From assembly GCA_965113315.1 (NCBI GenBank), contig OZ220363.1: a stretch of 64,000 nt of DNA; one strand, 5' to 3'. The stretch is from Podarcis vaucheri (lineage: Eukaryota). Positions 39,301 to 42,300 of this stretch are shown here, piece by piece (position 1 is the first letter of the stretch; every line of letters starts with the position of its first letter). Position numbers and translations under genes: made by a program. Under the pieces are notes generated by a model. The model was not told the origin of the DNA. It worked only from the letters and a program-made list of their open reading frames with translations, and searched no databases.

Positions 39301-42300
39301 TTCATTAGGGATTCCCACTTAGCTCGGGTAAATTACTGAAATGTACTGCTGGTGGATGATGGTTGAAGGACTTGTCTGTGAATTGATAATGTGCCTGGCT
39401 GATGTTATTGTTGATGGAAAAGAGAGGGCACTAGGATTTGTCTCAGGCTCAGTCCTTTGGTTTGTGGTTGACTGCTGGTCATAAGTAGGGATTGCATGAG
39501 TAGCTGTCCAGCTTCCCAACAATCTATCATCCAAATGTTGTCTCCTGCTTCAAAAGACTCTCTGCCTTGCTGCCCCGTATGCTCAGAACTGCCTCCCATA
39601 ACTTGTACATGGTGACACCTCTCTTACTTGAAATCCCTCATCAGAAGTAATGTTTTCTGCCCACAGTCTTTAGCACAGTGTTTCCCAACCGGTGTTCCGC
39701 GGCACACTAGTGTGCCGTGAGACATTGGCTGGTGTGCCGTGGGAGGGAGGCGGGCGAGTCGGGTGGTGAGAGGCGGCGGCGGCGAGGATCCGCGTCGAGC
39801 CGGGGGCGGCTCCGCGGTGGTGGTGCCGAGGTTTCTCTCTCCATTCTCCCCTCACACACACACACAGGAAATAACACAGGATCAGCTGACAGGACCCAGC
39901 CAATGGGGCGGCGGCGGGGCAGCGCGTGCAAAAGGGAGGAGCGCGAGACAGCGGACGAGGAGGAGGCCGGCATGTCCGGGCAGCAGCAGCAACAACAGCA
40001 GCAGCAACTCCCGGCGACGGCTCCTCAAGCCCCGGGCAACCCTACTCCCTCACCGGCCTCGGCCGCCCTCCTGCTCCACCCGCCGCCGCCTCCCCCGTCG
40101 CCACCGACCACCTCGGCCTCACCGCCGCCCCCTCCTCCGCCCGCTATCGCCGCCACCACCACAACAGCCGCCGCCGCCTCAGCTGCCGCCGTCCCTCAGT
40201 CCCTCACTCTGCTGCCTCCTCCCCCCCCACCCCCAAAGCTTGGAGGTTCCCCGGCAAGGGGGAGGGAAAAAAATTGAAAACTTTCACTTTCGTGCATCCC
40301 TCCCGGCGTGACGCTGCGCGCTGACGTCACGGGGCTGTAATGGTGGTGTGCCGCGAGATTTTTTTCATTAAACAGGTGTGCCGTTGCCCAAAAAAGGTTG
40401 GGAAACACTGCTTTAGCACAAACATATTATTTCCTATGTATTCCACCTAGTGGTGCAGCAATAAAACTGCTAGCACATTTGCAAAGCTCAGCAGGGTCTA
40501 GCATGCTTTCAAGTTGGATGGGTGAGCATGTGCTGAGATTCCAGCATTGCAGGGGGGTGAACTTAGATGGCCTTTGCGGTCCCTTCCAACTCTATGATTC
40601 TATGTCATAATGTAGCCTGTTGGCTAATTAAGCCTAACCGTGTGTTTGAAACAACCATATATTCCTTCTCTGCTAACTTCTGCAGCTTTCCTTTCATATT
40701 CTCTAAAGTACTATGCACACTGATGGGGTACGTAAATCAATGCATGAAATATATTGCTGTCTGTAGACTATTACAAACTTAACCTTCTTTGAAATAATGG
40801 TCATTTCCCAGGAGTAGTAGTAGATCCTCTAAAATGGCTTTGCCCAACCTCGTACCTTATTATTATTATTATTACCCTGCCCATCTGGCTGGGTTTCCCC
40901 AGCCACTCTGGGTGGCTTCCAACAGAATATTAAAATACAATAGTCTATTAATCATTAAAAGATTCCCCAAACAGGGTTGCCTTCAGATGTCTTCTAAAAG
41001 TCTGGTAGTTGTTTTTCTCTTTGACATCTAATGGGAGGGCGTTCCACAGGGCGGGTGCCACTACCGAGAAGGCCCTCTGCCTGGTTCCCTGTAACTTGGC
41101 TTCTCACAGCAAGGGAACCTCCAGAAGGCCCTTGAAGCTGCACCTCAGTGTCCGGGCAGAACGATGGGGGTGGAGACACTTCTTCAGGTATACTGGACCG
41201 AGGCTGTTTAGGGCTTTAAAGGTCAGCACCAACACTTTGAATTGTGCTCAGAAACGTACTGGGAGCCAGTGTAGGTTTATCAAGACTGGTGTTATATGGT
41301 CTTGGCGGCCTCTCCCAGTCACCAGTCTAGCTGCCGCATTCTGGATTAGTTGTAGTTTCCGGGTCACCTTCAAAGGTAGCCCCACACAGAGCGCATTGCA
41401 GTAGTCCAAGCGAGAGATAACTAGAGCATGCACCACTCTGGCGAGACAGTCTGTTTTGGACTAGAGCTCGCGGGTGGCGCTGTGGGGACGCGGGTGGCGC
41501 TGTGGGTAAAACCTCAGCGCCTAGGACTTGCCGATCGCATGGTTGGTGGTTCGAATCCCCGTGGCGGGGTGCGCTCCCGTCGTTCGGTCCCAGCGCCTGC
41601 CAACCTAGCAGTTCGAAAGCACCTCCGGGTGCAAGTAGATAAATAGGGACTGCTTACCAGCGGGAAGGTAAACGGCGTTCCGTGTGCTGCACTGGCTCGC
41701 CAGATGCAGCTTGTCATGCTGGCCACGTGACCCGGAAGTGTCTGCGGACAGCGCTGGCTCCCGGCCTATAGAGTGAGATGAGCGCACAACCCTAGAGTCT
41801 GGCAAGACTGGCCCGTACGGGCAGGGGTACCTTTACCTCCCCTTAGCCCCAGGCAGCACGGTCCAGCTGGCTCAGGCTGATAGGATTTGCGTTCCAAAAC
41901 ATCTGGAGGGCATGAGGTTGGGAAAGGCTGCTTTAGGATGTGCCAACAGGATTTTAGGGCTCATCCACACTTACCTTTGCTTTGCATTTGTAGGCACAGG
42001 TTCAAGCTTTCCAGATCCAGATATGAACTCTTTGTTTTTTGCCCCACGCTTTCCCTGCAAAACCCTCTCTTTCTCACTGAACTGGAGCAAACAGCAATCC
42101 ACTGAAAACCCAAATTGCCATTTGCACCTATTCGGTGTCAAAGAGCGGATTTTCCTGGGTGAAGCACTCAGACATGGACTGGGAAAGCAGTGGGGGGGGA
42201 TTGGAGTGGATGGGATGAGTGAATTTCAAACTACTGATTCTCTGTGACTTTAGCTTTGCTGTTTAAAGCCCAGTGTTCAGGTTATCCACTGAGATCACTG

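Follow-up and report, generated by a model that had tools for sequence, protein, structure and literature searches.

A Charlie/SPIN-like non-autonomous hAT element with RANBP9-derived cargo in a beta-spectrin intron of Podarcis vaucheri

The DNA analysed here, a 64-kb stretch of contig OZ220363.1 from the wall lizard Podarcis vaucheri (assembly GCA_965113315.1; "the window" in the following), contains at positions 39676–40410 a 735-bp element bounded by perfect, 15-bp terminal inverted repeats (TIRs) and by a perfect target-site duplication (TSD) of 8 bp. Very probably, this element is a non-autonomous, Charlie/SPIN-like hAT transposon whose family acquired DNA from the 5' end of RANBP9 and was amplified in Podarcis, the present copy being a deletion derivative that inserted into an intron of a beta-spectrin gene. 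The element is a fragment of the RANBP9 gene, not a RANBP9 gene.

The initial annotation of the window had described 15-bp TIRs, an 8-bp duplication, subterminal repeats and a CpG-rich interior, all of which can be read directly in the sequence. The 15-mer TIR has two exact matches in the whole window, and the repeat search returned them as a pair with 100% complementarity. All three occurrences of the motif GGTGTGCCG in the window fall within the element, as compared to 0.12 occurrences expected by chance; when relaxed and inverted forms are included, five GTGTGCCG/CGGCACAC motifs are found, each within about 70 bp or less of an element end (on the 5' side, CGGCACAC at 39700–39707 and GTGTGCCG at 39710–39717 and 39732–39739). 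The GTGTGCCG motifs are presumed to be binding sites of the transposase. The element has a GC content of 0.665 and an observed/expected (o/e) CpG ratio of 0.84; the latter is only 0.28 for the window as a whole, and 0.16 and 0.29 for the two flanks of 1 kb; for the 231 bp upstream of the ATG (39741–39971), the CpG o/e ratio is 0.94. Motif scans indicated a CCAAT box (39900) and two GC boxes (39804 and 39906) in the part of the interior ("cargo") that precedes the ATG, and a palindromic motif TGACGTCA, similar to a cAMP response element (CRE), at 40322–40329 in the 3' cargo. The open reading frame (ORF) of the cargo starts with the ATG at 39972, comprises 101 codons and reads as had been quoted. 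A Pfam scan of this ORF, the only ORF of the element that was scanned, gave no match. With its 735 bp and the ORFs listed for it, the element is without transposase coding capacity, and nothing transposase-like was found in it, as had been noted before.

When the cargo ORF was searched against 5.8 billion proteins, two matches were obtained, one of them P0001 (153 amino acids) at an E value of 1.4e-10. P0001 starts with MSGQQ, aligns over about 70 residues with the cargo ORF, and continues into non-repetitive sequence. In a search of the PDB, P0001 matched 7nsc_A (human Ran-binding protein 9) with an E value of 1.1e-41, and RanBP10 with 4e-22; since its non-repetitive part matches Ran-binding protein 9 far above RanBP10, P0001 is a product of RANBP9 exon 1 read into intron 1. 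RANBP9 proteins of lizards (Podarcis, Pogona, Lerista) were retrieved with a profile built from fish RANBP9 and P0001; a search of representative proteins had yielded mostly short exon-1 fragments and no full-length lizard RANBP9, and one protein (P0122), which looked like a mammalian chimeric model, was set aside. About the first 72 residues of Podarcis lilfordi RANBP9 (P0310) match the cargo ORF; the alignment of this protein with the ORF has 73 identical columns, and an exact run of 38 residues, which takes in 24 non-repetitive residues, corresponds to positions 39984–40097 of the window. The alignment score with the cargo ORF drops with the distance of the species, from 336 (Podarcis) to 301 (Lerista) and 284 (Pogona), a gradient that fits capture within the lacertid lineage. 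Because the cargo region is of low complexity, composition shuffles of the ORF were run; they gave z values of 18.7 (whole sequence) and 10.8 (blocks of eight residues) against P0001, none of the 2000 shuffles in each of these two tests reaching the observed score, and a z value of 23 against P. lilfordi RANBP9. At the protein level, the coding cargo is thereby confirmed as matching the start of RANBP9, as first proposed. The adjoining segment 39777–39971 presumably represents promoter and 5' untranslated region (5'UTR) of this gene, and the 231 bp upstream of the ATG would likewise originate from RANBP9.

A search with P0001 also retrieved at least six short UniProt proteins of Podarcis muralis which are chimeric in sequence, namely P0006 (A0A670K2D3), P0007 (A0A670KE56), P0009 (A0A670IX10), P0011 (A0A670HM97), P0023 (A0A670HTN8) and P0044 (A0A670I7R8). 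All six possess the continuation of RANBP9 exon 1 toward the SPRY domain. P0011 consists of a 31-residue exact translation of window positions 39989–40081, in another frame, followed by the conserved 48-residue end of RANBP9 exon 1, while in P0023 and P0044 an exact translation of 39769–39798, upstream of the ATG, is joined directly to the same exon-1 end. P0007 terminates in KGWETL, the exact translation of 40393–40410, of which the last five residues, GWETL, represent the 3' TIR. In P0006, P0011, P0023 and P0044, the sequence after HYKG is an identical or near-identical tail; HYKG is the point where genomic ORFs of other species diverge, consistent with the splice donor of exon 1. The exon-1 end together with the common tail indicates that the family at first carried coding exon 1 in full, along with the splice donor and the beginning of intron 1. 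In the window copy, the exon-1 continuation is missing, the ORF departing from RANBP9 after about residue 72, and the region of approximately 40202–40258 weakly resembles the intron-derived tail of the fuller P. muralis copies (P0044 tail; tblastn, 47% identity, E = 0.57). Since the ORF leaves RANBP9 at about residue 72 and resumes in weakly tail-like sequence, we concluded from the sequence comparison that the window copy is an internally deleted derivative which has lost the splice donor. In the databases, the six P. muralis models are labelled "uncharacterized", except for one called "RANBP10"; since the sequences translated in them belong to copies of the transposon family, the models represent annotation artefacts.

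Logan contigs from three species (designated A, B and F) and one RNA run were aligned with the region 39200–40900. Depths of single-copy flanks were 57, 65 and 40 in the three species. Summed depth reached 0.75–2.0 million at the ends of the element (about 1.5–2.0 million over the 5' subterminal backbone) and 4x10^4 to 1.0x10^6 over the cargo, including cargo that is not of low complexity, such as 39884–39940, with 3.2x10^5 in run X1. Summed unitig depth, which is not equivalent to copy number and may be inflated about twofold by overlapping unitigs, suggests that copy-equivalents are of the order of 10^4 in the case of the ends and of 10^3 in that of the cargo; a single copy in a window of 64 kb agrees with these figures. 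An amplified family had been surmised from the start, and the cargo depth, at 10^3–10^4 times that of the flanks in three species, makes it far larger than was then guessed. High cargo depth in three species, diverse flanks and the presence of the cargo in several P. muralis models all point to transposition after capture. The boundaries of the family coincide with those of the window copy: contigs start exactly at 39676 (record 2 of run X1) and end exactly at 40410 (record 6 of the same run spans 40337–40410), and 207 RNA reads diverge immediately past 40410 into varied sequence. Another 117 RNA reads show a different, uniform sequence left of 40338 (agreement 0.96), and this uniform alternative interior marks the right edge of the cargo. 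On the left side, depth halves past about 39770, and loose ends in 14 and 22 contigs show that a subfamily departs from the window sequence beyond 39776. Within the cargo, an 81-bp segment (39830–39910) is missing from many copies, the joint 39829>39911 occurring in all four runs; 40035–40121 is missing from many copies as well.

The window copy differs from nearly all others at about a dozen positions, mostly by C>T or G>A changes, and about half of these differences are located at CpG sites of the family sequence. The majority letters at positions 40098, 40107, 40119 and 40121 restore the parental residues PPPATSAPP. The copy had been called intact, which is true of its perfect ends, as expected at a divergence of roughly 1.5%. 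The description does not extend to its interior, since the 3' half of exon 1 is gone and the differences from the family majority have accumulated; the window copy is young, not pristine.

The assignment to the hAT superfamily made in the initial annotation is borne out by several characters. Apart from having an 8-bp TSD, the element terminates in CAGTG, which corresponds to the YARNG motif, and its TIR is identical in 14 of 15 positions to that of hAT-N3_AC of Anolis (CAGTGGTTCCCAACCT) and also close to those of hAT-HT3_AC (CAGTGRTTCCCAAA) and SPIN_AC (CAGYGGTTCTCAACCT), as listed in Table 1 of Novick et al. 2011 (PMC3014272). Anolis hAT families have 8-bp TSDs, YARNG termini and the target NTCTAGAN or NYYTARRN (PMC3014272); Buster-type hAT elements show the target pattern nnnTAnnn (PMC3499496). 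The TSD of the window copy, CTTTAGCA, fits the Buster-type pattern by its TA at positions 4–5, and NYYTARRN save for position 7. The consensus of the 207 RNA reads running off the right end starts with GTCTAGAA, at an agreement of just 0.56, and this family target consensus fits NTCTAGAN. Both the end sequence and the target pattern thus match those Anolis families and support the classification as a non-autonomous hAT of the Charlie/SPIN-like (Buster) group. Among the Anolis elements, four autonomous families acquired by horizontal transfer (hAT-HT1-3_AC and SPIN_AC) cluster with mammalian Charlie elements (PMC3014272). The resemblance to the Charlie-like hAT elements of Anolis carolinensis (hAT-N3_AC, hAT-HT3_AC and derivatives, SPIN_AC) comprises the TIR (14/15), the YARNG terminus, the 8-bp TSD and the target NTCTAGAN, and the length of 735 bp compares with 300–800 bp for non-autonomous hAT families of Anolis. 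In contrast to them, the present family resides in another host lineage, the Lacertidae, differs from hAT-N3_AC in one TIR position, and carries exon sequence of a host gene, a cargo not reported for the Anolis elements. Uptake of extraneous DNA in Anolis, mostly of other transposable elements, has been reported for hobo_AC and Helitrons (PMC3014272).

The insertion itself appears not to be common to the three species. In species A (run X1), a single-copy contig covers 39200–39698 and passes through the TSD into the TIR, so that the insertion is present. A single-copy contig of 519 letters from species F (run X10) matches 39216–39667 and has another 63 letters. From species B (run X3), a contig of 131 letters matches 40411–40487 and is preceded by 54 letters; the depth at 39628, 141.6 as compared to 65.4, fits the assumption that these 54 letters lie at 39614–39667. 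The breaks in X10 and X3 occur where the empty-site joint 39667>40411, with its 10 ambiguous letters, would fall. Judged from where the contigs end, the insertion is probably absent in species F and in at least one allele of species B. If so, it either arose after these species had separated or is polymorphic to this day; being present in one of the three species and apparently absent in two, it would have been inserted during the Podarcis radiation. Besides, each of the three DNA runs has one approximately single-copy contig in which 39602 is linked directly to 40699, the shorter arm measuring 30 letters. Other contigs of the same runs cross 39602 straight, and the 39602/40699 joint is not a hAT empty site.

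The most likely history of the element is as follows. A Charlie-like non-autonomous hAT would have gained the CpG-island region at the 5' end of RANBP9 by template switching during repair or replication, as in the FoSTeST, or gap-filling, model of capture (PMC8277862), the captured stretch reaching at least from the start codon through the entire coding part of exon 1 and its splice donor into the very beginning of intron 1. Thereafter, the chimera would have been excised and reinserted by a hAT transposase acting in trans, which presumably recognizes the TIRs and the GTGTGCCG motifs. Amplification to very high copy number in Podarcis, a step supported by the data, ensued. Deletion derivatives may have been generated by abortive gap repair, and one of them inserted into the spectrin intron, duplicating 8 bp, as the data likewise support.

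Several observations weigh against this reading. The comparison between parent gene and cargo was made at the protein level throughout, and the origin of the segments 39777–39971 and 40191–40337 is one that we infer. BLASTP with compositional adjustment gave a non-significant E value of 8 for the ORF against P0001. By itself, the cargo ORF retrieved no RANBP9 chain from the PDB at E values up to 10; the likeness to human RANBP9 on which the initial annotation relied is too weak for detection there, and the link runs via squamate RANBP9, so that this likeness was a good lead, not itself evidence. The empty site which had been proposed as a check is represented by fitting contig ends in species F and B, while the joint 39667>40411 is not among the joints listed, absence being derived from the contig ends. 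To these points, the above-mentioned limits of summed depth are to be added.

An additional role of the insertion as an alternative CpG-island promoter for the downstream spectrin exons that encode the pleckstrin-homology (PH) domain appears improbable. The sense orientation, the CCAAT and GC boxes, the CRE-like palindrome and the retained CpG o/e ratio of 0.84 would suit such a function; against it, this copy is without the RANBP9 splice donor, and the RNA run X23 is derived from the same species as DNA run X10, where the site is apparently empty, so that its reads stem from other copies or from RANBP9. Of the X23 reads, 87% run on into unlike sequence; where they cover the coding part, they show a strand bias and have the parental letters, which makes RANBP9 itself or other members of the family their probable source.

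Still less probable is a purely local origin, in which gap filling without transposition brought the RANBP9 fragment into a hAT element already residing at this locus, and the chimera never transposed. Most animal Pack-TIRs are indeed single-copy and of gap-filling origin (PMC8277862). Here, however, the depth of the cargo itself is about 10^3 or more times that of single-copy sequence in all three species, the cargo is found in several gene models of P. muralis, and two species apparently lack the whole chimera, TSD included, at this site. That the match to RANBP9 is a mere coincidence of polyQ/polyP/polyA composition, the interior being the GC-rich, low-complexity core of a miniature inverted-repeat transposable element, as the composition-adjusted BLASTP result and the lack of a RANBP9 match in the PDB and of a Pfam family for the ORF might imply, is scarcely credible, given that shuffles, even those in blocks of eight residues, never came near the observed score (z 10.8–23), that the 38-residue exact run with RANBP9 of the same genus spans non-repetitive residues, and that sister copies hold the wholly non-repetitive second half of RANBP9 exon 1; a match confined to polyQ and polyP, which had initially been named as the outcome that would overturn the RANBP9 assignment, is thereby contradicted.

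Table 1. Features of the RANBP9-bearing hAT element and adjacent exons of the host gene in the 64-kb window of P. vaucheri
Feature	Position	Strand	Remarks
TSD, left copy, CTTTAGCA	39668–39675		TA at positions 4–5
5' TIR, CAGTGTTTCCCAACC	39676–39690	+	High-copy contigs start exactly at 39676
5' subterminal backbone	39691–39776	+	Motifs CGGCACAC and GTGTGCCG; inner limit approximate
GC-rich cargo upstream of ATG	39777–39971	+	Presumed RANBP9 promoter/5'UTR
RANBP9 start codon and about 72 first codons of exon 1 (cargo)	39972–40190	+	38-residue exact run, alignment, shuffle z 23
3' cargo past internal deletion point	40191–40337	+	ORF departs from RANBP9 after about residue 72
3' subterminal backbone	40338–40395	+	GTGTGCCG at 40346–40353 and 40376–40383; RNA reads diverge left of 40338
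3' TIR	40396–40410	-	Exact reverse complement of 5' TIR; 207 RNA reads diverge after 40410
TSD, right copy, CTTTAGCA	40411–40418		Matches left copy
Open frame with next downstream coding exon of beta-spectrin gene (PH-region start)	42776–43087	+	Context
PH-domain exon (PH_9)	44779–44973	+	Pfam; follows 42776–43087 exon

The host gene had been recognized as a spectrin gene, with which the present data agree: a beta-spectrin gene on the + strand has its calponin-homology (CH) exons at 214–423 and 1185–1439, followed by spectrin repeats (e.g., 12664–13029), for which the best match in the PDB is 8iah_M, a spectrin beta chain (2148 residues; E = 2.9e-62). We take its N-terminal exons to resemble the erythroid paralogue SPTB. 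The element is located upstream of the PH-domain exons, in the long intron before the first PH-region exon, and has the same orientation as the host gene (Table 1).

Directly to the right of the element, 40446–40624 is occupied by an unrelated high-copy repeat with a summed depth of up to 6x10^5 and a GGTCCCTTCCAACTCTATGATTC-like tail; 54–62 contigs per run diverge left of 40446, and the repeat is probably the 3' end of a family of short or long interspersed elements (SINE or LINE). Very deep repeats (about 10^6 summed depth) are also present at 39200–39256 and 40853–40900, beside microsatellites of the (ATT)n type. A GC-rich (0.58–0.62) repeat at 41440–41860 resembles a Sauria-type SINE in that its start, GCGGGTGGCGCTGTGGG, is duplicated and a tRNA-like box, GGTTCGAATCCC, is present; ARAGORN called no tRNA there. 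A TIR-like 15-mer at 41916–41930 (two mismatches) has no partner and adjoins an unrelated repeat, and was dismissed as a chance occurrence. Downstream of the spectrin gene, an open frame of 511 codons on the - strand (56382–57914) is GC-rich, includes an extended stretch of poly-Glu and is without a Pfam match; probably, it represents the large last exon of a convergent neighbour gene.

In plants, capture of gene fragments by DNA transposons is a classic route of exon shuffling. Pack-MULEs, known from rice and other plants, resemble the present family in being non-autonomous DNA transposons that capture and amplify GC-rich 5' fragments of genes. They differ in belonging to the Mutator superfamily, whose members have long TIRs and TSDs of 9–10 bp, and in their plant hosts, in contrast to a hAT in a lizard.

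In animals, the corresponding elements have been described as Pack-TIRs. In the largest animal survey, which covered 100 genomes, hAT elements were the carriers in 208 of 370 cases (Tan et al. 2021, Nat Commun 12:4280; PMC8277862), an example being Pack-hAT-N8_XT of Xenopus tropicalis, which carries the 5'UTR of CAPSL (PMC8277862). Only four Pack-TIRs in the 100 genomes were multicopy, the example given having three copies; multicopy Pack-TIRs tend to capture GC-rich regions, capture being followed by transposition (PMC8277862). The element described here shares with the animal Pack-TIRs and Pack-hATs a TIR transposon, mostly hAT, as carrier, a short host-gene fragment between the ends, and a TSD, and at the protein level its interior derives from a host gene located elsewhere, RANBP9, the locus itself being that of beta-spectrin. 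It is unlike them in its approximately 10^3 cargo copy-equivalents, by summed depth, in each of three species, and in that its cargo, at full length, would consist of start codon, complete first coding exon and splice donor. Literature searches (for the TIR string, for RANBP9 in combination with hAT or transposon, and for hAT miniature elements of Lacertidae) found no paper on this family, which is a new, unusually amplified instance of the documented Pack-TIR kind.

For annotation, the practical consequence is immediate: spurious RANBP9- and RANBP10-like models are already present in the P. muralis annotation, and the family should be masked. The significance of the window copy itself is modest: the insertion is truncated and intronic, and no effect of it on the spectrin gene has come to light. 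The family would be remarkable, if confirmed genome-wide, for the scale of its amplification and for the complete cassette of promoter, exon and donor in its fuller copies. It is conceivable, though we would not count it as likely, that one capture made a hAT the carrier of a complete RANBP9 CpG-island cassette, which became one of the dominant subfamilies and spread thousands of promoter/first-exon modules through Podarcis genomes; an unmethylated cargo in open chromatin might itself have favoured the amplification. If this were true, the family would represent among vertebrates what a Pack-MULE burst is in plants, and could seed new transcription starts and chimeric first exons at scale. With thousands of copies, and insertions polymorphic between species of wall lizards, it would offer a natural system in which to study the way capture takes place, the effect, favourable or adverse, of a CpG-island cargo on transposition, and the frequency with which host genes recruit such dispersed cassettes.

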